A stretch of 63,834 nucleotides of DNA, the filler included, from Octopus bimaculoides (taxonomy: Eukaryota), in the NCBI RefSeq assembly GCF_001194135.2. It is 7 parts of 5 records of this genome, joined end to end, with 100 filler letters (N's around TTAATTAATTAA, not from the genome) between each part and the next. Parts side by side here need not be neighbours in the genome. Positions count along the whole stretch, not along the records: positions 1 to 17,539 come from NC_068982.1; 6 more parts are not named here. One strand, given 5' to 3'. Numbering within the stretch: the stretch's first letter is position 1; every line of letters starts with the position of its first letter. Positions 1 through 18,346 of this stretch are shown one piece after another. The position numbers and the translations under genes were made by a program. The notes beneath the pieces are model-generated. The model did not search any database, was not told the origin of the DNA, and saw nothing but the letters and a program-made list of their open reading frames with translations.

Positions 1-152
1 TGTGAGGTAAGAAGTTTGCCTCCCAACCAGATAGTTTCAGATTCAGTCCCACTGCGTGGCACTTTGGGCAAGTGTCTTCTACTATAGTTTCGGGCCGACC
101 AAAGCCTTGTGAGTGGATTCAGTAGATGGAAACTGAAAGAAGCCCGTCGTAT
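1..152 (+). mobile_element. tRNA-derived SINE, family A (5' end cut by window)
   Basis: Contains TTCAGTCCCACTGCGTGGCACTTTGGGCAAGTGTCTTCTACTATAG...AAGAAGCCCGTCG, which recurs at least 7 times in the window; B-box-like head followed by a CORE-like CTTGGGCAAGT motif. Confidence 0.85.
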
Positions 153-250
153 ATACATGTATATATATCCACATAGCCATTACTCTTATATATCCACACA
201 GCCACTATTCATTTATATATTGTATATACATATATACCAGTCTAGTCATA

Positions 251-328
<78 letters not shown>
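251..328. repeat. (TATC)n microsatellite
   Basis: Pure tetranucleotide array. Confidence 0.95.
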
Positions 329-329
<1 letters not shown>

Positions 330-755
330 ATTTGAAGTCTTACAGCCGTTTCTGGGATAACCCAAGTGGGAGGTTAACATGTCTACGCATAGAGTATTCC
401 GTCATCAGAGACAAGGTATGAATATTTTATACAGAGAAAATTTACAGTTTACAAGGAATTAAATAAAGAATAAAGAAGTAAATAGAAGAATAAAGAATAA
501 AGGTAGAGTATAGACGGGAAAAGAATGAGTAGTGAAGATTATTCTTCTGTCGTTATTCTCCCGTCTGTATTCTACCTTCACTCTTTATTCATCTATTTTA
601 TTCCTTATAAATGTGGATATATTTTATTCCTTGTGAACTGTAAATTTTTCCTGTCTAAAATATTCATACCTTGTTTATAATGATCCAATAACCAGTGCGT
701 AGACATGTTAACCGACAAACTTGGATTATCCCAGAAACGGCTGTAAGGCTTCAAA
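330..755. mobile_element. Foldback element with ~200-bp imperfect inverted arms, probably PLE terminal-repeat derived
   Basis: ATTTGAAGTCTTACAGCCGTTTCTGGGATAA at the left end is mirrored by TTATCCCAGAAACGGCTGTAAGGCTTCAAAT at the right; the arms stay alignable to about 530/550. Confidence 0.8.
337..412 (-). ncRNA. Degenerate type-I hammerhead ribozyme motif
   Basis: Minus strand: GTCT-CTGATGA-...-GAAA-CGGCTG-TA-AGAC. Stem I (GTCT/AGAC) pairs; the base of stem II is imperfect. Confidence 0.55.
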
Positions 756-983
756 TTCACCTTACCTTAATTAGATTATTCTAAATGACTCGAGATATTC
801 GTTCTGCCTTGGTTTTGCTTTTTCGTCTTAATAAAATATATACCTGCTATAACGGAACTCTAATACTGATCCCTAGATCCAGCCTCAGCTGTGAACTTGG
901 AACCTAACAAACGACCAACTATAGCACTTACTCAGCGTACCTCTTCGTTTAGATCACATGTGAACTAAACCCCACATATTCTT

Positions 984-1027
<44 letters not shown>

Positions 1028-1095
1028 ACCCCAATATATTTACATTACGGAGACGCAGGGGGAGCACTAAGTAGTGATAAGTGAAAATACAATGT

Positions 1096-1362
1096 TATCA
1101 GCTCGAATATGCTTGATACATGTTCGAACTGGGAAAGAAGCCACTCACTGTATTTTCTCATGAAGAATATATCTCACTTGTTGACAAATGATCAGCTCGC
1201 AGTGACACCGACCTAGACTCACAGTCTAGGTAGGTGGCGCTGCGAGCTGACCGACGTGTGTACACACCATTTGTCAACAAACAGGATATATTCTCCGTGA
1301 CAAAACGCAGTGAGTAGCTTGTTCCCCAGTTCAAACGTTCATCAAGTATATTCCGACTGGTA
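1096..1362. mobile_element. MITE-like foldback flanked by TA (Tc1/mariner-type)
   Basis: Long imperfect inverted arms around a central GACCTAGACT-CAC-AGTCTAGGT hairpin; TA at both ends. Confidence 0.65.
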
Positions 1363-1525
1363 ATAATATTCCAATATATTTAGACTATTCATCATCGGTT
1401 CCAGTATAACTTTCATTGACCACGGAGTATGCATGCATGAATGTAAACTGAAATTCACAAATTTTGTTTCATCCTAATTTTCTTTTTAACGCACTTCCTA
1501 ATATTTGGTTTTATATATTCTATAG

Positions 1526-1621
1526 GCCGTTAGATTTAATGATGCAGAAATAGTTTCATATCTTGAAATGAAAACTCTTTCCGGTTTTCCCGAGATACCA
1601 AGCAGTCAGAACAGCACACAG
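1526..1621 (+). CDS. Internal coding exon (phase 0-0, 32 aa) of an Unpaired/helical-cytokine-like gene
   Basis: Acceptor TTTTATATATTCTATAG| and donor CAG|GTAACT; 96 nt open frame AVRFNDAEIVSYLEMKTLSGFPEIPSSQNSTQ; joins in frame to the exon at 2682. Confidence 0.75.
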
Positions 1622-1902
1622 GTAACTCTCTTTTAACTGTTTTATTTCAATCAGAAACCTCGGTACTTTTTCTTTTTAGAATGCGCCTATGAAAAGTATA
1701 ACCATCAGTGTTTACAGTCGACTTAATTATAGCAGATAAATTCGATCACTGTTGTTTCTCAACATAGTGACTGCTTCGTTTACTAGCGCTGTGAATTTAA
1801 TTTGTCACTTTGAATGTTGTAATGAAAGAAAATAACCAGGTGCAAAAACAAAACTAAATTTGCTACAGCAATACGTGTTCGTCCCTGCTTCGCTTAAAAA
1901 AA

Positions 1903-2121
1903 GGCGGCGGTGAGCTGGTAGAAACGTTAGCACACCTGGCGAAATGCTTAGTGATATTTCGTCTGGCTTTACGTTCTGAGTTCAAATTCCGCCGAGGTCG
2001 ACTTTGCCTTTCATCTTTTCAGGGGTCGATAAATTAAGTACCAGTTGCGTACTGGGGTCGATCTAATCGACAGGCTCCCTTCCCCAAAATTTCGGGCCTT
2101 GTGCCTAGAGTAGAAAAGAAT
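1903..2121 (+). mobile_element. tRNA-derived SINE, family B (Meta/MESC-like central domain)
   Basis: GGCGGTGAGCTGGTAGAAACGTTAGC...GAGTTCAAATTCCGCCGAGGTCGACTTTGCCTTTCATC...GGGGTCGATAAATTAAGTACCAG; many copies in the window. Confidence 0.85.
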
Positions 2122-2131
2122 GGAATGGTCT

Positions 2132-2388
2132 GGTCGTGAAATTAACGTATAAGTGGCTGAGCACTCCGCAGACATGTGTGCCCTTAACGTAGTTCTCAGG
2201 GAGATCCAGCGTGACACAGAACGTGACGAAGCTTGACCTTTGAATTACAGATACAAATCATTTTTGCCAGCTGAGTGGACTGAAGCAACGTGAAATAAAG
2301 TGTCTTGCTCAAGGAGACAACGCACTGCCGGGAATCGAACCCACGGCCTGCGATCGTGCGCGAATACCCTAACCACTGCGCCACGCTC
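2132..2388 (-). mobile_element. tRNA-derived SINE, family D
   Basis: Minus strand shows A box TGGCGCAGTGG and B box GGTTCGATTCC, then CCTTGAGCAAGACACTTTATTTCACGTTGC; its 3' part matches 62870-63050. Confidence 0.85.
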
Positions 2389-2681
2389 CCTGACTGTTAT
2401 TAGTTTATAGTTCTTAGTTCAAATGTTTCCGTCCGTAAAGCATAGAGAAAGATAAAAATGAGGTTGACTTGGTTTAATAGTTACGTTAATTGGAGGTGAA
2501 GTGCACGAATGATACGTCAACTGCTAAATGGCTAATTAATTTCTTACCACTTAATAATGACTTTATTAAAAATTACAATATGTTAAATAGCTTTATTTTC
2601 ATCCATCTTAAATTACGAATTTATGTCAGTATAATCCTTTCTTTATGCATAATATATAACGTATAAATATTTCTTTTACAG

Positions 2682-3002
2682 AATAAAAGTGATTTGTATA
2701 GTGAGGTTTTTGTGGCACTGTCAAAGGTAGCAGTATTCCTGGAACAAATGCAAACAGATGAAGATAATTCAGAAATGAAATATGAATTAGAGGATTTACA
2801 ATCTGAGAATTTCTCACAACTCTGTGATCTACAAATGTGGCTTCGTTCTACTGGTGTAAACGAAACGTTTGAGACACTTCGTTCTGTCATGCCTCATAAA
2901 CTACGTCATGTTGGCAACACATTTAAAAGATATGAAAGAGATTTCGTAGTTGTTTCCAGATATGGAAAACTTCTTCGTCGCTATCAGGATTATTATAATT
3001 AA
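2682..3002 (+). CDS. Terminal coding exon (106 aa + stop) of an Unpaired/IL-6/leptin-like helical cytokine candidate
   Basis: Acceptor TTCTTTTACAG|. Translation NKSDLYSEVFVALSKVAVFLEQMQTD...FSQLCDLQMWL...LRSVMPHKLRHVGNTFKRYERDFVVVSRYGKLLRRYQDYYN*. Non-repetitive and amphipathic-helical; motif spacing LC(E/D)...R-x-(I/V)M-x4-R...RD(W/F)xV..(K/R)Y matches the Unpaired-family C-terminus as recalled. Confidence 0.8.
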   Translation, partial: NKSDLYSEVFVALSKVAVFLEQMQTDEDNSEMKYELEDLQSENFSQLCDLQMWLRSTGVNETFETLRSVMPHKLRHVGNTFKRYERDFVVVSRYGKLLRRYQDYYN

Positions 3003-3130
3003 TTGGAACAACCCTGTTATATTTTCTTTTCCACCAAACACAAATATCACCCTTATTCAAGAATGAATATCTAAATATTGGATTATATTAATCTGAAGTA
3101 TATTCATATATATTATTTTTCAAGAACATT

Positions 3131-3136
3131 AATAAA
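3131..3136 (+). terminator. Candidate polyadenylation signal of the cytokine-like gene
   Basis: AATAAA 128 nt after the stop codon. Confidence 0.5.
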
Positions 3137-3834
3137 AATAACAGAACATATCTCATTCAACATATCATATACAGTTCAAACTTAAAATAACTGGGCTGAC
3201 CTACAAAATCTACAAATTAGTAGATTATTTAGATAAAAATAATTTTTTTTTTTTTCACAATTTGCCTAGCAAAATATGCTAAATTTCCATATTTCATACC
3301 AAAAATTTAAATCGAGAGATACGTTTGTTCATTGTTAATATTTAGAATATATAAATTGTAAGGATTAAAATCGCACAACTTGCAGCATTCCACTCGAAAC
3401 ATTCCTGGCATTACTTGGTTGGTTTCCTTGAATAACGGTGCTCGTGTATCTCCCAAAATATACTGGTGCTTTTAAAGAAGAACAAGGGATTAGGGCAATA
3501 TATAAGTGATTTAAATTTCCTATTGAATATTTATAATTTATACTCTCTCGGAAAGGCGAGAATCTCACAAAAGCTTTTTAAACAGCATTCACATACCGGT
3601 GCTTTTATATGATTATTTATTATAATTTATGCTTTTAATTTATATTAAATTTTAACACGTCTATTTAATTGATTGTATAATGTCTCTCTTCCCCCCCACA
3701 TTCCATTTTTATATAACTTTGTTCATTCCAACCCCACGTTTTGTAACCCCTGTCTGTAACGGTTTTATTGTATATATGAAAAGGTCTGTTGGTTATAATA
3801 AAAAGTAACATTGTTATTGTTGTTGAATATTGGT

Positions 3835-3965
3835 TTCAAATTTTTGCACAAGGCCAGTAATTTCGGGCAAGGGGCTGAGTTGATTACATTGACTCCATTG
3901 TTCATTTAGAACTTATTTTATCGATCTCGAAAGAATGAAAGGCAATGTCGATTCCGGCGGAATCT
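3835..3965 (-). mobile_element. SINE family B, partial
   Basis: GCACAAGGCC...TTATTTTATCGATCTCGAAAGAATGAAAGGCAATGTCGA. Confidence 0.7.
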
Positions 3966-4655
3966 TCGTTCAATATTAACGAAGAAAACACGTTTGATTC
4001 CGAGGTCTGTAAAATCTCAGCAATTTTCGCACATTTTATCTAAATAGGGATACATTTTTGTTGAATTTATGTCATTTCTACACAGAAATTGTATCTCATC
4101 CGTTCTGTTAGCTTCCTGTCTTACCCAAATTTCCTCAATCGACGGAATTGTCTCTTTTTAACTTTTACATTTGAAAAATTTGCACGTTTTTGAAAAACAA
4201 ATATGGAATCGTGTAACGGAATCATAATGTTCATAATCGGAAAAAAATACGGGAACCATAGGACATGTATGTATGTATGTATGTATGTATGTATGTATGT
4301 ATGTATGTATGTATGTATGTATGTATGTATGTATTGCATTCCCGGCATATGCCTAGAAGCCGTAGCAGTCTTCCCAACGAGATAACATATAGGGAAGATA
4401 ACTAAAACTATAGATTCAGTAGTTACTTCCCTTGAAACAAATCCCATCACAAGATATAGAACATTAAATCCGCATTAATTCCCTTTAATTATGTCGCACA
4501 CATGTTCGCTCGCTCATTCGCTCGTTCACTCCCTCACTCACTCACTCACTCACTCACTCACTCACTCACTCTTTCACTCACTCGCTTACTCACACATTCA
4601 CTCACTCACACTCACTCACTCGCATACACATACGTACATATTCTTTTATTCATTT

Positions 4656-4844
4656 ATTCTTTTACTTGTTTCAGTCATTTGACTGCGGCCATGCTGGAGC
4701 ATCACCTTTAGTCGAACTTATCGACCCTAGGACTTATTCTTTGTAAGCCTAGTACTTATTCTATCGGTGTCTTTTGCCGAACCGCCAATTTTACGGGGAC
4801 GTTAAGCGACGGTGGGGGACAAACATAGACAAACAAACATATAG

Positions 4845-4916
<72 letters not shown>

Positions 4917-5099
4917 TCAATCATACATATATATATAAGCAGGCTTCTTTCAGTTTCCGTCTACTAAATCGACTCACAAGGCTTTGCTCGGCCCGTGGCT
5001 ATAGTAGAAGACACTTGCGCAAGGTACCATGCAGTGGGACTGAACCCGGGACCATGAGGTTGGGAAGCAAGCTTCTTACCACACAGCGACGCCTGCGTC
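4656..5099 (-). mobile_element. Composite SINE: family A head + (TG/TA)n + family C tail
   Basis: A module at 4925-5099; C module at 4656-4830 (CAGTCATTTGACTGCGGCCATGCTGGAGCA...CCGAACCG). Confidence 0.85.
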
Positions 5100-5254
5100 T
5101 ATGTTATATACAATGTATACACAATTCAAAGAAAGAAAGCGTGAAGAAATATTTGAATACTAAATTTATTCAGACATCACGGGGTTAAAACAAATTACTT
5201 TAAACGTTTTTCGTCTCCCTTTTCTGTGTGTGTGTATGGGGGGGGGGGAATTCA

Positions 5255-5400
5255 TCGTGGTCACTGAGATATGCGAGTTTACGTGGATGAGAATCAACAA
5301 AGGACCTGGACAGGTGGAAGAAGAGCAATTGAGCTCCTCTCACGTTATCTCGATTTAACACCTGATGACTTTTAATTACGGGTCACCTTATAGGATACAG
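5255..5400 (+). mobile_element. Tc1/mariner transposase C-terminal remnant (continues at 5866-5930)
   Basis: Degenerate translation resembles WPPRSPDLTP.DF.LWGHLKD; after the foldback insertion it resumes as DVLHRKKPATLTALWEEI. Confidence 0.55.
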
Positions 5401-5410
5401 TTCTATAGTT

Positions 5411-5646
5411 AAGAGATGAGGAATTATGTACATTATTTACATTAATTACATTTGACCGATATTTGTCCTCATCTTGTTTGTTATTAACACAACGTTTTGG
5501 CTGATATACCCTCCAGCCTTCATCAGGTATCTTGGGGAAATTTCGAACCTGGGTTCTTATTCCTAAAGTATTTTACGATGTTATTATTATTATGTTATTA
5601 TTCAGGTTACTGACCCCGAGATTCCGAGTTCGATTCCAAGCAGTGA

Positions 5647-5717
<71 letters not shown>

Positions 5718-5865
5718 TCGAAAAATACCTTAGGAATGAGAACCCGGGTTCGAAATTTCCCCAAGACACCTGAAGAAGGCTGGTGGGTATATTAGCCGAA
5801 ACGTTGTGTTAACAATAAACAAGATGAGGACTAATATCCGTCAATTGTAAATAATGTAAATAATG
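5411..5865. mobile_element. Foldback element with hammerhead motifs in both arms and an internal (AAT)n
   Basis: Arms 5425-5600 and 5650-5865 are reverse complements; central CAGGTTACTG...CAGTGACCTG stem. Confidence 0.85.
5766..5809 (+). ncRNA. Minimal type-I hammerhead ribozyme (PLE type)
   Basis: ACAC-CTGAAGA-A-GGCT(12 nt)AGCC-GAAA-CG-TT-GTGT; stem I ACAC/GTGT, palindromic AACGTT stem III, GUU cleavage triplet. Confidence 0.65.
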
Positions 5866-5940
5866 CACCCTATAGGATGTTTTGCATCGCAAAAAACCGG
5901 CTACACTGACGGCCCTTTGGGAAGAAATCGNNNNNNNNNN

Positions 5941-5987
<47 letters not shown>

Positions 5988-6529
5988 TGTCATTCGGTAG
6001 AAATTAAGAAGGGACTCAACGGTCGAAAGTTTCGAAAATGGCATTTGTCATTCTCAAGAAATTCTAGGACATGATTTACTTTGTAACTACATAGATAGAC
6101 CCATCTCTTAATGTCACTGCCCAAACGAATAACAAAACCAGAAAGGAGCGATGGAAAGACAACGACTGCAATGAAATGATTTACACACACTACAACGCAA
6201 CACTACAACGCAACACTTCTTAAAAATATACAGTAATAAACTCATACAGGGAATACCCAATAAATTGAATTAACCCAACAACATATGCCACACAGGCCCG
6301 ATATCCAGCAGAAGAACAGAACCTACACTGCACAAACAACACGCAATCCAAACACTAATACAACAGAATACCCCATAACAAAACATACTGATGAAATACA
6401 ATACTCTCCCCATCAAAAGAAAAAAAAAACAAAAACAAAAACAAGAAGGAAATGCTGCACACACCTCACCAACAGGAAAGTGAAGCAAGCGATGCAATAA
6501 AAAAGTTACTTGAAACTACCAGATGTTGA

Positions 6530-7255
6530 ATAATAATAGTGGTGATGACGTTGGTGACGAACATTACCTTACCTCAGTTTATGAGAGACAAGACAAACTC
6601 TGCTGGTAGCAGCGAAAATGATATTGGACCTTTAAGGGAAGGCCTCTCGTTCGGCAGAGGATCAGTAGAGATGAAGGCTGATCACAGCTGTTATCCTAAG
6701 ACAACATCAACAAATAAAGAGAATAAGGAGAAGGATGTGGATCAACGAAGAAAACAGGATAGCGATGCAGTACTACTTCGACAATGAACCTAAAAGAAGC
6801 GGGGTTATAGAAAACGGATGTTAACAGTTTGGGTAGAGAAGGTTATGTTTAAAGTGACTGAGCAGAGACTATGAGATTAAGTTAATGCTATTAGGAGAAG
6901 AAATTGGATGACAGAATTGGCGCTGGAAGAAATCACAAGAGAACTGGAAAAGAAAGACCAGGCAGTAGAAAAGCTAAACAAAAACATAAGAGATACAGTT
7001 CAAACCAAGGAAAAAACCTAAAGGAAGGGGAAAAAAATAAATAATAGCCCTACCAATCAGAAAGGGACAACTGGTACCAGCGACTTAAGCTGAGAAAGAT
7101 CAGAAGATTTTAGATGAGTTGCAGGAAGAAACCAGTTAAGAAGAATGGAAAAGATTATTAGTATCAAAGACTATTAGTATTAAAAAAGAAGATTATCTGA
7201 CAGGCAAGAGAAGGTTTTATATGGTAAATTCCCAAAGATAGTTGCAGGAAATAGT
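6530..7255 (+). mobile_element. Dong/R4-clade LINE, N-terminal remnant (subfamily 1)
   Basis: Frameshifted GYRKRMLTVWVEKVMFKVTEQRL..VNAIRRRNWMTELALEEI motif. Confidence 0.75.
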
Positions 7256-7259
7256 AATA

Positions 7260-7463
7260 GTCCTTTCTACAATAGGCACAAGGCCTGAAATTTTGGGGAT
7301 GGGACTAGTCGATCACATCAACCCCAGTGTTTCAATGGTACTTGATTTATCGACCCCGAAAGGATGAAAAGCAAAGTCGACCTCAGCGTAATTTGAACTC
7401 AGAATGAAACACCGCTATGTATTTCGTCCAGCGTGCTAACGGTTCTGCCAGGTCGCCGCCTTA
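7260..7463 (-). mobile_element. SINE family B
   Basis: Reverse-complement match to 1903-2121. Confidence 0.85.
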
Positions 7464-7836
7464 AGGAAATAGTAATAGTGAGACATGGTTAGGGTTGCAG
7501 AAAGGCTGACCTTTCCACAACCTGCTGAATCTATTTATAGACCTGCAGAATATGATCTATTCACCAATCTGCTGCCCAACTATTCCACTACAATGGTAGT
7601 GGTGGTGATGGTGATAATGAAAAAGAAAATAATAATAATATGCTACAGCTGCTGATACTAAATACTACTAATACTACAATAATACTACAACTACTACTAT
7701 TATGATAGCACAGGAATCTGAGGCCCAACTACCACCCTTACCACTACCCCTACCCGTGCTACTGTTGCTGTTGCTAAAACCACTGCTACTACTACACATA
7801 AAAACAATAATACCAGTGATATCAGTGATGATGATG

Positions 7837-7869
<33 letters not shown>

Positions 7870-7870
<1 letters not shown>

Positions 7871-9800
7871 AAGGAAACGGGTGGAATCTCCTTATGGGCT
7901 CATAATGATACATCTAGTGATGGTGTCACAATAAAAACACTGGTAATTGCGTAACCTGATAATCTCTACCTCATATGAGTGACAATGAAAAAACAAAATA
8001 TTGTGAATAACGGTGGTAACGAAACTGAAGCCAATGATGGTGACAGTGTTACACCCAGTGGGCTCAGAGATTCTGGTCTGCCTCCAGCCTGTCGATGTCC
8101 AGAAAGGGACCACCACACACGGCGTAGAGGGAGCAAGCAAATTAATGCTGTGGTCATGGAGTGTTACTACCTGAGCAGCCCAGTAGATGAAAATGGGGCT
8201 CAAATTAGGGGTTACCGACAACGTATGTATGATCATTGGAGAGAAAAGGGATTGTTTCAACACACGGAACAGAGACTATGTGATCAAACTAGAGCAATAA
8301 GAAAAATTGTTGGTTCACAGAAGTAGAGCTCGAAGTTATCAAAAGACGGGTCATGGAAAATAGCAGCGGAGGAAGCGATGAAAATACAGTTCTTACTAAT
8401 AAGAGTAATCTCATAGCTCAGGAAAGGAGCAGTGGTAGTTTACTTGAGAGACATATAGATGATCTAAAAGAAGACGATAAAACTAATAGCGACATGACAG
8501 ATGAACAAAAGGCAATCTACGACAGAATAAAGGTAAGACTACAGGAGAACGATAGCGACATTATTTGCAACCTTAAGAAGGTTGACCGGTGGAAATTGAA
8601 CCAAGAAACGAAAAATGTCAATGAAATTCTGAAATACATCAGAACAAACATCACAGAAACAAATAATTTGATCAAGGCAGCAAGCATTGTTGTAGCAGAA
8701 AACGTGGATGTTGTTGTCAAGACGAAGACATACAATGGGAGTGACAAAAGAAAAGACCCATGGTGGAAAAGAAGAATCCAGGCAGGGTTAGATCAGCTCT
8801 CGAAGGAAATGTCTGTGTTAGACCGAAAAGAGAAAGGGGAGCTTAAAAACGAACAAAAATACAGGGTGCTGGAAAGGAAGTATAATATTGAAAGAAAGGG
8901 CCTGAAATTAGTAATGGAGGAACTGAAACAGCGCCACGTTGCAAAGAAAGCAAAGATGGTAAGATACGACCTAAGAATGAAGGGATACCAGCAGGGTAGG
9001 TTATTCAGAGTAGATCAGAAGAGATTCTACAAAGAAATAAATGGAGAGTGTACAGATGAAAAGTTGATACCTGATAACATTGAAAGTTAAAGGTTTTGGA
9101 GCGACATCTGGAGCAAAGACAAGGAGCACAAGAAGGATGCCGAATGGTTGCAAGAACTGAAACAAACAGTAGTCTGTCTAAAACGGGAAGAACTAGTCAT
9201 TTCAGTTAGGGAAGTGAAGGAAATCAGCAGAAAAATGAGCAACTGGAAGGCCCCGGGACCAGATGGAGTTCAAGGCTACTGGATCAAAAGATTTGGTGAA
9301 TATCATGCACGAATAGCTGCGCAACTCAGCACCTTGTTAAATGACGACTAAGTAATACCAGAGTGGTTGACATTGGGTAGGACAGTGCTGTGCCTGAAAA
9401 ACATAGAAAAAGGCAATACGGTAGACAATTACAGGCCGATATCCTGTTTGCCACTTATGTGGAAGTTATTGACTGGAATAGTCACAGAGTCAATGTATGG
9501 ACATCTGGATAAAAATGGAGTCCTGCCACATGAGCAGAAGGGTTGCAAGCGTAAGTGCAGAGGTACCAAGGATGAACTCCTAATAGATAAAACTGTTCTT
9601 AGAGACTGCAAAAGGAGGAAAAGTAACTTAGCCATATTATGGATCGACTATCGTAAGGCGTACGATATGATCCTACATTCTTGGATTATGCAGTGTTTTA
9701 ACCTGTTTGGGAATGCATCGAATGTTGAGCGATTGCTTGGAAAAAGTATGGCGAATTGGAGGACGGACCTGACAGCATACAGAAGAAGTTTAGGGACGAA
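7870..9800 (+). mobile_element. Dong/R4-clade LINE, 5' end through RT domain, disrupted and 3'-truncated
   Basis: VMECYYLSSP...RGYRQRMYDHWREKGLFQHTEQRLCDQTRAIRK; NWKAPGPDGVQGYWIK; [17 protein letters not shown]; [20 protein letters not shown]; WIDYRKAYD; stops and frameshifts; begins right after (AAT)n. Confidence 0.9.
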
Positions 9801-11000
9801 AAGAATTTGAGTTGTTGTCGTTGTTGTTGTTGCTGGTTTAGGGATCAGGGAGTTTGGGAAGAGCTTGCTCTTCCGTGTGAGCAGGTAGCCCATTTTTTCC
9901 ATTGCGGAGGTTTTGCTGTAGGGGTTCTCAGCTGTCCATGGCATTCTTGTTGATACGATTTGGAATTGTCAAAGGGGTAGCTTCGATTTATCTAATTGAG
10001 GGTAGAAACCCTTTTGATGGGTGGCACTTTCACAAATGTAACACTTGGCCTTTCTGCCCTCAACTAGAACTTTTATGGGTTCCACACCCTCCATGTAAAT
10101 TATGTCAAGGATCCTGTCAAAGGGTTTTTCAGTCTCCAGCATTTCCACTTTCACCTGGACCACCGACCAATTTTCTTTCGAGGTGGATTTGAAACTTAGA
10201 CTATAACCGTATTCCTCCAGTATTTTCCCCAGATACTGAATGTTATATAGCTACAAGAGACCCAAAATCTCTTGCTGTTCTATGTGGCAAATCGAACTTT
10301 CAGACATTTTTCTGCCTGTGCTGGAGCCGGATTTTCGATCCTAGTCTTCTTCTTAAGACAACGATAGAGCACAGTTCTTTTTACGATTTGATCTTTTTCG
10401 CCTGGTGGTAGAGCGGGATTAGGTTTTACCAGGCATTTTCGGAAAAGTTTATCAACATAACTATCAAAAGTGTGCTGCACCTAACTCTCTTCTGTAATTT
10501 TGGTGAAAAAGGCTTGGGATTACTTGTTATTTCGTTGTTGTTGTTGTTGTTGTTGTTGTCGTCATTGTTGTTCGAAGTGGAGGACGTGACTTCATTTCCT
10601 TGTTAAAAATTTTCCTTTTCTATTTCTCTGGAAGCATGCTGTTATTGTTGTTGTTGTTGTTGTTGTTGTCGTCGTCATTGGTTTCGATATATCTCATTGT
10701 TTGTTCCACTTCAAACTGCGTGATGCTGTTACTGAAGTTGTCGTTGATCGATGTGGTTTGAAAGATTTCTTTGTTGAAATATTCCATTCTGTGAATTTTT
10801 TCAACGTCACTGTTGTTTACAACAGCCCTGTCGTCTGTTTCTTCCAATGTGGTGACGTAGCACATCACACTTACTCCCTCTTTCACTACGTTCTGATGAC
10901 GCCTCTCACTCTTTCTCCTTCTCTCGTGTACGAGTGTCACCCTGTCGATTTCTCCAAGATAATAAGGGAAAAACGAAAATATAAAATTAAATAAAAATGT
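9800..11000 (-). mobile_element. Probable Tx1/L1-clade ORF1 remnant
   Basis: IKVLVEGRKAKCYICESATH (CX2CX4H zinc-knuckle-like) plus upstream fragments; internal (AAC)n tracts. Confidence 0.55.
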
Positions 11001-11171
11001 ACTCCATGACTAGTGGGCAATACTCGAAAAAAAAACAAAAAAAGAAAACAAGGAACGTCACTAGTTGGTAGGAAACAACTGGCTTTTTACGGCGGCGTAA
11101 ATTCCCAAACTGGATAAATGATTATCCGTGGTTTTGTTGACAAAATTTCGGAATGAGGTCGTACGTGGCTT

Positions 11172-11182
11172 GCTTGACTGGC

Positions 11183-11245
<63 letters not shown>
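11172..11245. repeat. (AAT)n microsatellite
   Basis: Pure triplet array. Confidence 0.95.
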
Positions 11246-11340
11246 CACAGCAAACCACAGCACATACCCAAGGCACACAGAGCTGCGCTCGGTAGTGAAG
11301 TGAAAGCACATTATAAAAATAAAACTACTACTAATAATAA

Positions 11341-11560
11341 TAATCCTTTCTACTGGAAGCACAAGGCCTCAAATTTGGGGGAAGGGATTAAGTCGATTAC
11401 ATCGACTCCAGTACGTTACTGGTACTTAATTTATCGACCCCCGAAAGGGTGAAAGGCAAAGTCGACCTCGGCGAAATTTGAACTCAGAACGTAGCGGCAG
11501 ACGAAACACTGCTAAGCATTTCGTCCGACGTGCTAACGTTTCTGCTAGATCGACGCCTTA
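11341..11560 (-). mobile_element. SINE family B (partial + strand copy follows at 11575-11700)
   Basis: Full-length reverse-complement match to family B. Confidence 0.85.
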
Positions 11561-11734
11561 ACAACAATAAAATGGGGGTCAACATTGCTTTGTTTCCTTC
11601 GGGATCGATAAATTAAGTACCAGTGAAATGCTGGGATCTATTTAATCGACTAATCCCCCCTTCTCAAAATTTCAGGCCTTGTGCTTTTAGTAGAAAAGAC
11701 TATGTACATGTTTTGTCTTGCTGTAAAAAATGAG

Positions 11735-11982
11735 CCACAGCAAATATTCTGCTCAATACCAAAGATTTGCTTGTCAGTTGTTTGACCTTAACCAGTTGAG
11801 CATGTCCCTTAGTGACTGACGATAGGTGCATCTCTGACCACGAGCAGAAGTTGTGGGGGAGCATCGTAATCATGTGCTGAAATGAATTCTTTGGGGTTTG
11901 AATAATACATCTCTAGAAACATGGATGTTTTGTTCATCATCCTTAAACAACCCTTATTCAGGGACCTTTTGAGTGGGACGAG

Positions 11983-11985
<3 letters not shown>
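11735..11985 (+). repeat. Unclassified interspersed repeat (family G), partial
   Basis: Closely similar to 16955-17200. Confidence 0.75.
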
Positions 11986-12014
<29 letters not shown>

Positions 12015-12194
12015 GTCTATCTATCCATCCACGCGCACACACACACACACGCACGCACACACACACTCACACACGCACACACACAATATGCCTGTGTGTG
12101 TATATATACGCAAAAGTATATCCATTCTTAGATATATTTCTTACACGCATACACACACTCATACTCATACGCACACGCACACACACGCACACAC

Positions 12195-12229
<35 letters not shown>

Positions 12230-12749
12230 AACTACACACACATGCACACACACACATAATATGCCTGTGTGTATATATGTACAAAAATATATCCATTCTT
12301 ACCTATTTCTAACACACACACAATATATATATAGAGTAATGTAAAGTGGTAGCCAAGAAACCGGAAAAGTTCACTGGGAAGGCCATCACGAGGATATTAA
12401 GATAACTGAATGAAATAATTTAGGTCACGATGGAACAGAATGGGCGCAGTCAAGAAAGAATTAGAAGCGCATTGTGACAAGCGGTGTATAACAGCATCAT
12501 ATAGTCTGGTGGCTACAGGTGATAGGTACATTAACAAATTTCTCTCTTACTCTGTACACTACACTCACACACACACACACACACACACATACATATATGT
12601 CCGACGAACGGGAACGAGAAACTCGGAGTAACAGTTTTTGTCATGTCTTTGCAGCTTTGCTAATAAAGCATATTGCTCTACCTCCGGTATTCGAGCACTA
12701 TTTTCTCCAACCTTGTCTCTCATTTATGTGCTTACTCTGGTATATATAT

Positions 12750-12781
<32 letters not shown>

Positions 12782-13426
12782 NNNNNNNNNNNNNNNNNNN
12801 NNNNNNNNNNNNNNNNNNNNNNNNNNNNNNNNNNNNNNNNNNNNNNNNNNNNNNNNNNNNNNNNNNNNNNNNNNNNNNNNNNNNNNNNNNNNNNNNNNNN
12901 NNNNNNNNNNNNNNNNNNNNNNNNNNNNNNNNNNNNNNNNNNNNNNNNNNNNNNNNNNNNNNNNNNNNNNNNNNNNNNNNNNNNNNNNNNNNNNNNNNNN
13001 NNNNNNNNNNNNNNNNNNNNNNNNNNNNNNNNNNNNNNNNNNNNNNNNNNNNNNNNNNNNNNNNNNNNNNNNNNNNNNNNNNNNNNNNNNNNNNNNNNNN
13101 NNNNNNNNNNNNNNNNNNNNNNNNNNNNNNNNNNNNNNNNNNNNNNNNNNNNNNNNNNNNNNNNNNNNNNNNNNNNNNNNNNNNNNNNNNNNNNNNNNNN
13201 NNNNNNNNNNNNNNNNNNNNNNNNNNNNNNNNNNNNNNNNNNNNNNNNNNNNNNNNNNNNNNNNNNNNNNNNNNNNNNNNNNNNNNNNNNNNNNNNNNNN
13301 NNNNNNNNNNNNNNNNNNNNNNNNNNNNNNNNNNNNNNNNNNNNNNNNNNNNNNNNNNNNNNNNNNNNNNNNNNNNNNNNNNNNNNNNNNNNNNNNNNNN
13401 NNNNNNNNNNNNNNNNNNNNNNNNNN

Positions 13427-13469
<43 letters not shown>

Positions 13470-13806
13470 CGACGGGCTTCTTTCAGTTTCCGTCTACCAA
13501 ATCCACTCACAAGGCTTTTGTCGGCCTGAGGCTGTAGTAGAAGACACTTGCCCAAGGTGCCATGCAGTGGGACTGAACCCGGGACCATGTGGTTTGTAAA
13601 CAAGCTACATACCACACAACCACTCATATATATCTTTTATTTGTTTCAGTCATTAGACTGCGGCCGAGCTGGGGCACTGCCTTGAATTTTAGTCGAATGA
13701 ATCTATCCCACTACGTTTTATAAGCTTTATACTTATTCTATCGTTTTCTTTTGCCGAGTCGTGTTAAGTTACGGTTCTCAAGCGGTGGTGGGGAGACAGA
13801 CAGACA

Positions 13807-13840
<34 letters not shown>

Positions 13841-13973
13841 ACGGGCTTCTTTTAGTTTCCGTCTTCTAAATCTACTCACAAGGCTTTCGTCAGAGCGAGG
13901 CTAGAGTAGAAGACACTTGCCCGGAACCATGTGGCTGGCTAGCAAGCTTCTTACCACAAGGCCAAGCCTACGC

Positions 13974-13975
<2 letters not shown>
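13470..13975 (-). mobile_element. SINE cluster: family A (13470-13625) then composite C+A (13635-13975)
   Basis: Matches to the A and C modules. Confidence 0.8.
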
Positions 13976-14023
<48 letters not shown>

Positions 14024-14024
14024 G

Positions 14025-14690
14025 TCTCGGACCGACATGCCCAACTATTTCGGACCTGTGGGTTTATGCTGAACGGCTGCTGTCACGTGTGGGACGAGTC
14101 CCCCTGACGGCCGAGTCTCGTGACAATTGCTCCGCCACCGTCCCTCAACCGGGAAGGCAAGGCAGTCTTCATCGTACTGGTGGCCATGGTGAAAGAATGT
14201 GTGTGGTGGACTCGAGCGAAAGGATTAGAGACAAACACTTACTTCTCTGGCCAATCGCTCATCAACTTTCTCAACTACCACTTGAAAAGTGAAGGTGAGA
14301 ATGGAGAGACAGGGTTTGTCTTGTGAAAGTTTCAAAAAAAGGTGGGTGAATGTAGCAAAGATGGTGCGTACGAGTGACGAAACCACTTTGAGCATGATCT
14401 TTTATAACGAAAAAAGAGAGAGAGAGAGAGAGCTTTTTGCTCTCATGTGTTTATTCCCTCCCTACCTGAGGTTACCGTGGTCTTTTCCGTAGGCTTTTCT
14501 TTCCACGGATAAACCTAATCCTGCTTTTTACATTTTTAAAATTCTTTTGTGATACACGATCCCTTTCGATTATTTTTTTCTCCCGATCCCTTTTGATCGT
14601 CTTTTTTCTTTTTCATTTTCGAAAAGAAAGGCTCTACATTTATATTTGTCCCCTCTGTGTTCAGCCCTGCGTGACCAATAAAGAAACTTA
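14025..14690 (+). mobile_element. Tx1/L1-clade LINE 3' end (ORF2 C-terminus, 3' UTR, AATAAA, TATC tail)
   Basis: CPTISDLWVYAERLLSRVGRVPLTAES / LNREGKAVFIVLVAMVKECVWWTRAKG / FKKRWVNVAKM; ends CCAATAAAGAAA followed by (TATC)n. Confidence 0.75.
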
Positions 14691-14714
14691 TCTATCTATC
14701 TGTCTATCTATCTA

Positions 14715-14745
<31 letters not shown>

Positions 14746-14840
14746 GTAGACTGTCTCCGGTAAAACGGAAAATCTAGAAATGCGGACACTTCCGTTCCTA
14801 AGTTTGCCGGAAAATTGTTCCGGTACTGTGTATGCATATA

Positions 14841-14935
<95 letters not shown>

Positions 14936-14947
14936 ATGTATGTATGT

Positions 14948-15140
14948 ATGTGGGAAAGGAGAGACATTAGGCTGGCCATCAAGATGAAGGTGTAGCAAGC
15001 AGTTCTACTGCCTATACTACTATACGTTTGTGACACTTGGACGGTTTATGATCGCCACGCCAAAGGACTAAACTGCTTCAACATGAAGTGCTTAAGAAAG
15101 CTGTTGAAAATCACTTGGCGAGATTAGGTCCCGGAACGGG
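14948..15140 (+). mobile_element. RTE-clade (BovB-like) LINE fragment
   Basis: WERRDIRLAIKMKV*QAVLLPILLYVCDTWTVYDRHAKGLNCFNMKCLRKLLKITWRD*VP. Confidence 0.8.
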
Positions 15141-15359
15141 TGAGTGGACAAACGAAAGAGACATTCAACACGTTTTGTAAGCCTTACGTATATCATTAAT
15201 TAAAAATTGTTTGGTTCGGTCCCATGCAAATTGATGCACGTTAGGCTTCTCTCAGAAAACTTGGTCGTCAGGAACCCGCTGCCTCCGCCCGATCTGCTAG
15301 GTTTCTTGCAGAAACCTGCAAAACTTAAAGTTGTATGGGACGAATTCAAACTGTTGAAA

Positions 15360-15385
15360 ATAATAATAATGATGATGATGATAAT

Positions 15386-15427
<42 letters not shown>

Positions 15428-15464
15428 AATAATAATAATAATAATGATGATAATAATAATGATG

Positions 15465-15520
<56 letters not shown>
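15360..15520. repeat. Compound (AAT)/(GAT)/(AAC) microsatellite
   Basis: Direct inspection. Confidence 0.95.
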
Positions 15521-15521
<1 letters not shown>

Positions 15522-15680
15522 TGGAGAAACTTTCAAAATACAAAGACCTGGAAATAGAGGTAACTCGAATGTGGAATCTAAAAACAGAAACAATTCCTAT
15601 CATAGAAGGTGCCTTAGGTATAATAAAAAAATATTCAGACAAATACATAACAAAAACACCAGGACTTACAAATATATATG
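15520..15680 (+). mobile_element. Dong/R4 restriction-like endonuclease C-terminal fragment
   Basis: EKLSKYKDLEIEVTRMWNLKTETIPIIEGALG. Confidence 0.8.
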
Positions 15681-15689
15681 AACGCCAAG

Positions 15690-16470
15690 ACGGATACAAA
15701 GGACCGGTGGCTATGGATGAGGAAGAGTGACCTGAAGATAAAGACAGAAGCATTCATATGTAGGCGCAGCTCAGGAACAAGCATTAAGGACCAATTATAT
15801 GAAGTGCAGAATTGACAACACTATCGATAGCGACAAATGCAGAATGTGTGGTGAGAGGGATGAAACGGTATGGCACATCGTTAGCGAATGTTCGAAACTG
15901 GCACAACGCGAATACAAACGACGCCATGACAATGTGGTAAGAATGATCCATTGGGAACTCTGTGGAAATCACGGCCTACAAAGGACAAAGATGTGGTATG
16001 AACAAACCACAGAAGGAGTCGCTGAAAATGAGAATTGCAAAATCCTGTGGGATGCAATGATCCAAAGCGATCACCTGACCACACACAAGAATCGGACATT
16101 GTTGTGCGAGCATGCATGACTGTCGGCATAAGATGCCCCGCTGGCAACAGGACCAAAGAGAAAGAAGAAAAACTGAACAACCATGACGATTTGAAGTGGG
16201 AAATACGAAGGTTGTGGTCAATGAGGAGAGTAGACGTGATACCAGTAATTGGTGCAGTTGGAAGTATCAGCACTCAACTACCAACATGGCTGAAAAAGAT
16301 TGGTGCAAATGTGAAGGTAGAACATCTATAAAAATCAGCATTGCTTGTAACTGCAAGAATTCTTCGCAGGATTCTTGAAGCATGACCAGTAAACAAATGT
16401 CACCTTAGTCTGCTGGCTGGGGGCAGAAGACACTTTCCATCATACTCAGCAAAATAAGCTGAGAGATTTC
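15690..16470 (+). mobile_element. Dong/R4 LINE 3' end: CCHC knuckle, RLE endonuclease and 3' UTR ending in (AAT)n
   Basis: KCRMCGERDETVWHIVSECSKLAQREYKRRHD; ENENCKILWD; DDLKWEIRRLWSMRRVDVIPVIGAVG; ARILRRILEA*. Confidence 0.9.
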
Positions 16471-16543
<73 letters not shown>

Positions 16544-16544
16544 A

Positions 16545-16950
16545 AAAACCTTTCTATTAAAGGCACAAGATCTGAAATTTTTAGGGAGGAGTAAGTCGAT
16601 TACATCGACCCAGTGCGTAACTGGTACTTATTTCATCGACCCCGATAGGATGAAAAGCAAAGTCGACCTCAGTGGAATTTCATTCAGAACATAAAGACGG
16701 ACGAAATGCCGCTAAGCACTTTGACTGGCCTGCTAACGGTTCTGCCAGCTCGCCGCCTTTATAATGATAATCCTTTCTACTATCGGCACAAGGCCTGAAA
16801 TTTTAGGCGGCGGGGACTAATCGATTACATCGGCTCCAATATTCAACTGGTACTTAATTTATCGACCCCGGATGGAAGAAAGGCAAAGTCAACGTCAGCG
16901 GAATTTGAACTCACAACGTAAAAACAGACGAAATGCTGCTAAGTTATTCT
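16545..16950 (-). mobile_element. Two tandem SINE family B copies
   Basis: Copies at 16545-16760 and 16765-16950. Confidence 0.85.
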
Positions 16951-16954
16951 GCTT

Positions 16955-17400
16955 AATACCACAGATTTACTTGTCAGTTGTTTGAGCTTAACCATTTGAG
17001 CATGTCGCTTGGTGGCTGATGATATGTGCATCTCTGATCACGAACAGAAGTAGTGGGGGAGCATCATAGCCATGTGTTGAGAGGAATTCTTTGGGGTTTG
17101 AATAATTCACCTTTGGAAACATGGGTGTTTTGCTCAACATCCTTAAATACACCTTATTCAGGGACCTTTTGAGCGGGATGGGCTACTCGACCTGAAAAAA
17201 ATTCTAACTGAGCCCCACCTGCGAGGTCATGCGCTTTTTATCTTGATATAAGATCACCATGTCGTGCACATATGGTTGTGATGCATGTGCCTCGTGTACC
17301 CTTATCAGACGGGTAGTCATGATGGGTATATTGGGCTTTGTATATTTTACCCCAGTGTCACTTTGATGGCATGCACTGCTCTCTTACTCAATAATAATAA
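16955..17400 (+). repeat. Interspersed repeat family G ending in (AAT)n, possibly a LINE 3' UTR
   Basis: Shares ~240 bp with 11735-11985; ends CTCTCTTACTC(AAT)n. Confidence 0.65.
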
Positions 17401-18346
17401 TAGTTAGAACAACAACAACAAAAGCACTCAGAGAGTGCAAACCTCCGCCAAGGGAACACCAACGTCCTTTCAACGATTAGCCGGAGATGTTTTTTGAAAT
17501 GAGAATATCTGAAATAAACTCGACTGCTCTTACGAACGANNNNNNNNNNNNNNNNNNNNNNNNNNNNNNNNNNNNNNNNNNNNTTAATTAATTAANNNNN
17601 NNNNNNNNNNNNNNNNNNNNNNNNNNNNNNNNNNNNNNNACACCCATACACACATATATATATATACATACATACATGCATGCAAGAATGCTTTGCGTTA
17701 CGGAAGAAATCCCTGAAAACTTGCCGTAACGCGAAAACATTTTTCCCATTGATTTTCCTTGTAAGTGATAATACGTTCCTACGGATATTTCCCAAAAACA
17801 TGAAAATGATTTCTAAATATACACAGAACAATTTCTAGACATATTTCGAATAAGACTGCTAATATGGTTATGTATTGTGAGAGGAATGGTGACAGGAGGA
17901 GGGCTATTGGAATGATGAAAGACTCTTATAGTTCATCATCATCATCAACATTTATTTGAGGGGCGAACAACTTATTCATCTCTTTGTACAGCTCAATGTA
18001 GAAACTGAACTCATTGTAAACTATTGTTATTATTATGTTCCGTTCATGATTAGAGTTTTTATCAATGAAATCTTGCAAATTTTCCTCTATAAGCTCCAAC
18101 TCTTTAACAAATTTTTTTATTGTCCACTGAAGTGGAGTTGTTGCAATTTCCCAATCCTCAGCTTGCTTATTGCTCTAACCACATCAGTCTCTCGTTAGAT
18201 AAGCTTTCGTAACGAGACACTAGCAACACAACCACGTTTTTCACCGTGACTTCTTCGAACTTGTAAGCGTTTCTATATCTTTCCTAATTTGATGAAGATT
18301 TTCTGTTTATGGAAATTTACCTGATGAAAGCGGTGTGTGTGCATGC

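Follow-up and report, generated by a model that had tools for sequence, protein, structure and literature searches.

The Unpaired (Upd) proteins are protostome ligands of the JAK/STAT pathway: Drosophila Upd1, Upd2 and Upd3 (PF15972) and the insect upd-like proteins are helical, secreted and glycosylated, and Upds act through the receptor Domeless. Insect reviews single out Upd as the one pathway component that is not conserved, and report that Hemiptera and fleas lack it and that none was found in Tribolium. Nasonia unpaired-like is another known insect upd-like gene, and Aedes Upd-like activates Dome-dependent Socs expression (bioRxiv 10.1101/2025.09.21.677592). According to a 2026 survey, no IL-6-like ligand has yet come to light in most invertebrates, molluscs included, and homologues of the receptor, JAK and STAT occur in molluscs (PMC13203501). 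Here we analysed a stretch of 63,834 nucleotides from Octopus bimaculoides (assembly GCF_001194135.2; positions 1 to 17,539 come from NC_068982.1), hereafter the window, which is AT-rich, repeat-laden animal DNA. A preliminary description of this DNA, made from the sequence alone, had placed in it a spliced Upd/IL-6/leptin-like helical cytokine gene. Our analyses indicated that positions 1526-3002 probably contain the last two coding exons of a secreted IL-6/Unpaired-type cytokine gene of O. bimaculoides. The gene would be an uncharacterised helical cytokine gene of a type that is itself already known.

Two Coding Exons in the O. bimaculoides Window

The exons and the elements encoded by them were located as follows, the helices and loops being placed by the predicted secondary structure of the orthologue model:

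1526..1621, plus strand: penultimate coding exon, 32 codons, phase 0 at both ends (from the translation and conserved splice sites), coding for the final residue of helix A, the short AB-loop helix AEIVSYLEM (1544-1570) and SGFP (1580-1591), which belongs to the conserved L-x-GFP loop motif
1622..2681, plus strand: intron, 1,060 nt, GT...AG
2682..3002, plus strand: last coding exon, 106 codons, with the stop codon TAA at 3000-3002
2685-2759, plus strand: predicted helix B, in the last exon, containing AVFLEQ
2769-2849, plus strand: predicted helix C, in the last exon, with the family-invariant Cys at 2823-2825
between helices C and D, plus strand: CD loop, in the last exon, containing RSVMPHKLR
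2919-2996, plus strand: predicted helix D, in the last exon, beginning near RDFVVV
3003..3136, plus strand: start of the putative 3' untranslated region (UTR), as far as the poly(A)-signal-like hexamer AATAAA (3131-3136)

The first of these exons translates to AVRFNDAEIVSYLEMKTLSGFPEIPSSQNSTQ and the second to NKSDLY...RRYQDYYN, followed by the stop codon. The splice contexts (tatag/GCC, CACAG/gtaact and ttttacag/AAT) are all phase 0, and identical contexts were found at the genomic loci of O. sinensis and O. vulgaris. Three gene models use the same junction: that of O. bimaculoides (A0A0L8HS43; 124 aa, 100% identical to the window product and beginning at the internal Met of MKTLSG), that of O. 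sinensis (LOC118762197; 226 aa) and that of O. vulgaris (233 aa, 88% identical to the window product). The canonical phase-0 AG/GT sites of the preliminary description hold, the translation reads as written there, and the three models join the exons alike. The predicted junction 1621/2682 rests on these gene models and on the cross-phylum conservation of the intron described below. The suggestion that the gene was unannotated was right only in that existing models are labelled 'uncharacterised'; the models do exist, although the O. bimaculoides one is partial (5'-truncated).

The four N-glycosylation sequons reported earlier (NST, NKS, NFS and NET) are all present in the window product. The positions of the first three are kept in the other two octopuses (as NNT, NKS and NFS), and NET is lost (NEM). 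The downstream AATAAA that had been offered as a further sign of a gene is also present, but it is weak evidence alone, because the hexamer is common in AT-rich DNA (38 copies found in the window versus 26 expected) and reads ATTAAA in both O. sinensis and O. vulgaris. The 3' UTR is collinear in the three octopuses and approximately 94% identical; its conservation was dropped as support since this value is no higher than that of the coding sequence.

A Protostome-Wide Family with Conserved Motifs and Introns

A first profile, built from the three octopus sequences and searched against 1.84 billion representative proteins, retrieved 22 relatives (E 7.6e-12 to 9e-4), and a second, arthropod-weighted profile added further members, giving about 45 relatives in all. 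Among molluscs, these include proteins from the bivalves Ylistrum, Tegillarca, Mytilus and Saccostrea and from the gastropods Lottia (V4AP96) and Gigantopelta; the annelid Owenia is also represented. Arthropod members come from beetles (Leptinotarsa, Nicrophorus, Carabus and Pyrocoelia), a caddisfly, a katydid, a stick insect, the copepod Tigriopus and oribatid mites. Every named member is labelled 'uncharacterized' or 'hypothetical', none of the family proteins carries a precomputed Pfam domain, and the short members are last-exon open reading frames (ORFs) called on unannotated eukaryotic contigs. No dipteran protein was recovered by the profile searches; word-indexed protein searches returned few members and nothing named 'unpaired'. 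Literature searches on the accessions, on family peptide motifs and on molluscan Upd found no description of the family. Two different cephalopod-like last-exon ORFs (P0006 and P0007) lie on one 426-kb ENA contig, which suggests that they are tandem paralogues.

The family alignment shows a constant order of elements. Its N-terminal part consists of a hydrophobic segment, W-x-x-P-C, helix A and a D-G-(F/M)-P or D-W-L-P loop, and its C-terminal part of A-V-(F/G)-L-E-Q...D-(E/Q), an invariant L-C, R-x-(V/I)-M-x4-R and R-D-(Y/F/W)-(I/L)-I. The motifs singled out in the preliminary description (the LxGFP loop, LC, RxVMxxxxR and RDF) thus turned out to be conserved motifs, with conserved spacings, of a protostome-wide family. 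Almost every complete member has, 8-30 residues before W..PC, a stretch of 10 residues whose Kyte-Doolittle mean is 2.2-3.9. The alignment contains a single invariant Cys, and most mature family domains have exactly two Cys, suggesting one disulfide between the N-terminus and helix C. Four arthropod members from beetles and a katydid (P0033, P0041, P0042 and P0046) are extended at the N-terminus by a long stretch that includes the conserved motif G-(M/L)-L-D-R-D-(Q/E)-R-T, and their hydrophobic segment occurs only 35-160 residues in; these precursors may be signal-anchored (type II membrane) cytokines, or their 5' ends may be over-predicted.

In order to place the window gene in this family, hidden Markov models (HMMs) were compared with the 2,630 six-frame ORFs of the window. 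An HMM lacking cephalopod sequences matched the ORF of the last exon (2667-2999) with an E-value of 7.2e-20 (68 bits), and an arthropod-only HMM matched the same ORF (E 1.5e-12). Because both models match, membership of the window gene in the family is independent of the octopus sequences. The exon structure is shared as well. Two phase-0 introns occur at alignment positions matching those of the octopus in Gigantopelta, Mytilus and Nicrophorus, the first after helix A and the second after an AB-loop exon of 32-40 codons (38-40 codons in these three genera), and the last exon encodes helices B-D. The last exon of Owenia begins at the matching position (the small AB-loop exon is unmapped there).

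Within octopuses, the window and the O. sinensis locus are collinear, with 87-92% nucleotide identity in introns and flanks and 93.5% in coding sequence, and the ratio of non-synonymous to synonymous substitution rates (dN/dS) is 0.42 (10 synonymous and 17 non-synonymous differences; one-sided binomial p 0.035). An exon identity barely above that of the introns, together with the location of the exon for helix A outside the window, could be taken as signs of a pseudogene in decay, or of an ORF that arose by chance beside splice-like sites. We consider this very improbable: the exons are stop-free, the canonical splice sites are intact in three species, all family motifs are preserved, and the dN/dS value and the match of the non-cephalopod HMM both argue against decay. 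The decisive evidence lies in the deeper comparisons and not in those from octopus to octopus.

Predicted Fold of the Family

Structures were predicted with AlphaFold2 for two targets, the O. vulgaris orthologue, using the family alignment, and a beetle member, using a 37-sequence alignment. The O. vulgaris model (mean predicted local distance difference test, pLDDT, 84.7; predicted template modelling score, pTM, 0.75) has long helices at residues 70-96, 129-153, 157-183 and 207-232, connected by a 32-residue AB loop with a short helix, a 3-residue BC turn and a 23-residue CD loop. The beetle model (pLDDT 92.7, pTM 0.89) has the same layout. The predicted connectivity is that of an up-up-down-down long-chain cytokine. 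Mapping of the model onto the DNA was in agreement with the earlier assignment of the exons to helices B-D of a four-helix cytokine, the window holding the AB-loop exon and the helix B-D exon.

Both models were compared with 350,542 PDB chains using Foldseek, and the 50 best neighbours were listed for each. All of these best 50, for either model, are long-chain class-I cytokines: IL-11, CLCF1, G-CSF, IL-6, CNTF, LIF, OSM, IL-27 p28, prolactin, placental lactogen and growth hormone (GH). The target-normalised template modelling score (TM) for IL-11 is 0.78-0.84, with a root-mean-square deviation of about 3 Å. No generic four-helix bundle was present among the best 50 neighbours of either model. 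The proposal that structure prediction and fold comparison would reveal a four-helix bundle was therefore confirmed at the level of the models, with a cytokine layout and exclusively class-I cytokines among the listed neighbours.

Sequence Links to Named Cytokine Families

A 53-sequence family profile was aligned with single sequences using hhalign, with 120 shuffles each for CNTF and CLCF1, whose sequences were confirmed to be identical to PDB chains 1cnt and 8d7h_D. The results were:

human CNTF: score 28.1, 121 collinear columns from helix A to C; shuffles 12.6 +/- 2.3, maximum 20.6, 0 of 120 reaching the score
CLCF1: score 21.1, 119 columns, helices B-D; shuffles 11.9 +/- 2.1, maximum 18.2, 0 of 120 reaching the score
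LIF: score 17.6, 49 columns, helices B-C; unshuffled
IL-6, IL-11, G-CSF, GH, EPO, leptin, IL-2, IFN-alpha and cytochrome b562: scores <=15

According to these alignments, the family appears closest in sequence to CNTF and CLCF1, and the links are weak but specific. Leptin-, GH-, EPO-, IL-2- and interferon-like identities were discarded, as their hhalign scores are at background; with them falls the leptin-like part of the preliminary description. A search of PDB sequences with the family profile (HMMER) returned no cytokine, only chance helical matches (Rop and RepA).

Pfam scanning of 37 members at a permissive threshold, against 24,736 families, gave one match to the Unpaired family PF15972. 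It involves the beetle protein P0047 (E 8.8e-4; 19.4 bits, the gathering score being 27), aligns residues 8-154 with profile positions 22-168 of 273, and spans the protein from the W..PC motif through helix C. In isolation this match is not strong; it carries weight because Unpaired was the one pre-hypothesised family out of 24,736 and because of its length and collinearity. Pfam scans gave no PF15972 match for the octopus product or the O. vulgaris orthologue, and none for the arthropod, lophotrochozoan and whole-family consensus sequences, which gave spurious helical matches only. IL11 was matched by 2 of the 37 members (E 0.07-0.1), and no curated Pfam IL6, IL11, LIF_OSM or CNTF match reached the gathering score. 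Profile comparison, the check that had been suggested for the cytokine assignment, was thus partly favourable: CNTF and CLCF1 exceed all their shuffles, but no Pfam match reaches gathering level. Similarly, an Unpaired-like identity is favoured through the sub-threshold match of P0047, although the octopus protein itself gives no match. Taken together, homology of the family to Unpaired is likely but not established.

Comparison with Unpaired and IL-6-Type Cytokines

Like the Upds, the family is protostome and helical, and the octopus protein would share glycosylation and, as judged from its putative signal segment, secretion; Domeless would be the expected receptor for the octopus family too. 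A difference lies in size, as Drosophila Upds have approximately 400 aa and the family proteins approximately 225-250 aa.

The CNTF/CLCF1/LIF group has the same long-chain up-up-down-down bundle as predicted here, with target-normalised TM values of approximately 0.5-0.8, and its three members gave the best hhalign scores among the cytokines tried. DGMP of CNTF aligns with the AB-loop D-G-(M/F)-P of the family, and helices B and C are collinear, with A-Y...LLEDQ in CNTF against A-Y...AVFLEQ..DE in the family. The last exon of LIF, CLCF1 and CT-1 encodes helices B-D, as in the octopus gene. On the other hand, identity to the CNTF group is only about 13%, hhalign gives probabilities no higher than 18%, and HMMER detects no match. 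The site-III motif FxxK of the LIF group is not kept, the octopus protein having F-K-R-Y and the arthropod proteins no Phe there. The disulfide patterns of LIF and IL-6 also differ from the single Cys pair of the family, which would join the N-terminus to helix C. That the aromatic residue of R-D-(Y/F/W), at the predicted start of helix D, occupies the position of the IL-6-family site-III aromatic is speculation based on the CLCF1 alignment.

IL-11, IL-6 and G-CSF are the best structural neighbours (TM 0.7-0.78 for IL-6 and G-CSF), and all their introns are phase 0, as in the octopus gene. They show no significant sequence similarity to the family, with hhalign scores at background, and IL-6 and G-CSF have five coding exons versus three in the core of the octopus gene.

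The Upstream Exon and the Putative Signal Segment

The exon for helix A and a signal-like segment, of the kind that the preliminary description had expected upstream of the window, was located in the O. sinensis and O. vulgaris orthologues. This exon (exon A) encodes ...VITMLAILFIRKTWTMALPSVTQEATSRPWNQPC...LEKAM and lies approximately 3.9-4.2 kb upstream of the counterpart of the 1526-1621 exon. By comparison with this orthologue DNA, helix A and a signal-like segment of the O. bimaculoides protein would be encoded upstream of the window, and a family HMM run on the window detected the two known exons only, and neither exon A nor a second copy of the gene. In the genomes of both orthologues, the frame of exon A runs upstream via GYPAG(K/R)VITMLAILFIRKTWT to an AG acceptor, which is compatible with the further 5' exon of the O. 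vulgaris model. The O. vulgaris protein has a hydrophobic segment, VITMLAILFI (Kyte-Doolittle mean 3.1), 19 residues before W..PC. Exon A codes for this segment in the genomic DNA of both O. sinensis and O. vulgaris, and the segment aligns with the signal peptides of the relatives. Judging by this orthologue DNA, the octopus protein may have a signal peptide. In O. sinensis, the first coding exon (signal segment, W..PC and helix A) is found twice, at positions 7794-8057 and 9923-10189 of the locus sequence (L001), approximately 2.1 kb apart; these near-identical copies reflect either tandem duplication at the locus or a duplication introduced in the assembly.

These data bear on whether the product could be an intracellular helical bundle without a signal peptide, its cytokine-like fold being a by-product of generic four-helix packing. 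The RefSeq model of O. sinensis, with its start at MALPSV, would imply such a product. P0002 begins 14 residues ahead of W..PC, its N-terminus is not hydrophobic, and a signal peptide is also missing from CNTF, the protein that matched best in sequence. However, exon A stays open upstream in both octopus genomes, across the hydrophobic segment and as far as an AG acceptor, that segment aligns with the signal peptides of relatives, and the two conserved Cys and the N-glycosylation sequons suit an extracellular protein. Moreover, Rop and cytochrome b562 are absent from the best 50 structural neighbours, and cytochrome b562 is at background in hhalign. An intracellular bundle is, in our judgement, quite unlikely, although somewhat less so than a pseudogene.

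A Candidate JAK/STAT Ligand

From the exons, splice sites, family, motifs, intron positions, predicted fold and structural neighbours, we infer how a secreted IL-6/Unpaired-type cytokine of octopus would act. The signal segment contributed by the upstream exon would direct secretion, and the Cys of W-x-x-PC would pair with the invariant Cys of helix C in a disulfide. The glycosylated bundle would then bind the cytokine-binding module of an octopus Domeless/gp130-like receptor via helices A and C and also via the tip that the AB loop and the beginning of helix D make up. Dimerisation of the receptor would activate JAK and STAT. We put the chance that the gene product is a JAK/STAT ligand at even or slightly better, lower than that of its being a secreted cytokine of this type.

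Several observations count against the assignment of the gene as a secreted IL-6/Unpaired-type cytokine gene. The O. sinensis RefSeq model begins (MALPSV) downstream of the hydrophobic segment, which makes the octopus start codon and signal peptide, both outside the window, provisional. The dN/dS of 0.42 indicates moderate constraint only. The best E-values in Foldseek were 0.0016 and 0.014, with none <=0.001, and the hhalign probability for CNTF was only 18%. Pfam and PDB searches with the 138-aa octopus product returned no named cytokine family. PF15972 was matched by only one of about 47 sequences scanned (members plus three consensus sequences), below the gathering score, and unrelated helical families also reached E-values of 0.002-0.008 in the Pfam scans.

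Since the sequence links to named cytokines are sub-threshold, the protein could also be a secreted four-helix factor that does not signal via Domeless/gp130 and JAK/STAT, such as a hormone or neurotrophic-like factor that uses another receptor, or a factor bound to the extracellular matrix, and share only its fold with IL-6-type cytokines. Shrimp Domeless, moreover, is reportedly activated by unrelated ligands, a C-type lectin and peroxiredoxin 4 (PMC13203501). Against this, the long-chain cytokine fold is known only from ligands of class-I cytokine receptors, and the best 50 PDB neighbours of the two models are all such ligands; in addition, the collinear similarity to CNTF and CLCF1 lies above all shuffles and one member matches Pfam Unpaired. 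We regard a factor outside the JAK/STAT pathway as unlikely, although it is the most serious of the alternatives weighed here.

Repeats and Other Elements of the Window

Apart from the exons of the candidate cytokine gene, the following elements were found:

1095..1363, no strand assigned: palindromic foldback resembling a miniature inverted-repeat transposable element, in the upstream intron; arms 1095-1190 / 1268-1363, 78% complementary, with an inner hairpin at 1192-1250
330-756: second foldback with nested inverted repeats, 330-367/719-756 (95%), 372-465/620-713 (84%) and 470-528/550-608 (81%)
7979-10200 and 15799-16331: degenerate remnants of non-long-terminal-repeat retrotransposons
5931-5940 and 12782-13426: assembly gaps (N runs), flanked by (CA)n/(TA)n microsatellites

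The RefSeq model of O. sinensis contains 25 extra residues (DIFCVTKRSEYLFPQFERASSIFRQ) that map to window positions 1285-1371 with a 69% protein match and an in-frame stop, and an inverted copy of this segment is present at 1173-1048. A missed exon was rejected as explanation, since the segment lies in the right arm of the palindrome at 1095-1363, has a stop in the window and does not figure in the O. vulgaris model; the likely explanation is an annotation artefact or else a repeat that has been exonised. The foldback at 330-756 adjoins a (TATC)n microsatellite at approximately 250-330. The intron between the two coding exons contains a repeat-rich insertion (approximately 1683-2042) with no counterpart in the intron of O. 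sinensis, and positions 1906-2344 match many places in the O. sinensis locus and belong to repeat families resembling short interspersed nuclear elements (SINEs). A tRNA-derived SINE in this intron was discarded, as ARAGORN and Rfam found no tRNA or RNA family. Within the retrotransposon remnants, a reverse transcriptase domain (RVT_1; E 2.5e-8) was detected at 9367-9810 and is bordered by disrupted ORFs, and positions 15799-16119 match part of zf-RVT (E 3.6e-4). ORFs listed across 5931-5940 and 12782-13426 are artefacts, because these are the assembly gaps.

Significance for Cephalopods and the Candidate Cytokine Family

A family of approximately 230-aa proteins that extends from octopus to beetles and has a confidently predicted IL-6/CNTF-type fold provides a candidate molluscan JAK/STAT ligand. 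The octopus gene may further be what cephalopods retain of a single cytokine gene of early bilaterians, whose descendants would comprise the insect Unpaired and upd-like genes, the family described here in molluscs, annelids, crustaceans and mites, and the vertebrate CNTF/CLCF1/IL-6 group; we hold this tentatively, at a little under an even chance. The extension to Lophotrochozoa and the sequence bridge to CNTF and CLCF1 may be the new parts of this picture. If it is true, the Domeless/gp130 ligand of Lophotrochozoa would have been found, together with the first link of sequence, intron position and fold that places IL-6-type cytokines before the protostome-deuterostome split. The family also makes a common origin of Unpaired and the vertebrate IL-6-family cytokines directly testable, and for cephalopods the gene would offer an entry point to the cytokine control of regeneration, immunity and neural biology.

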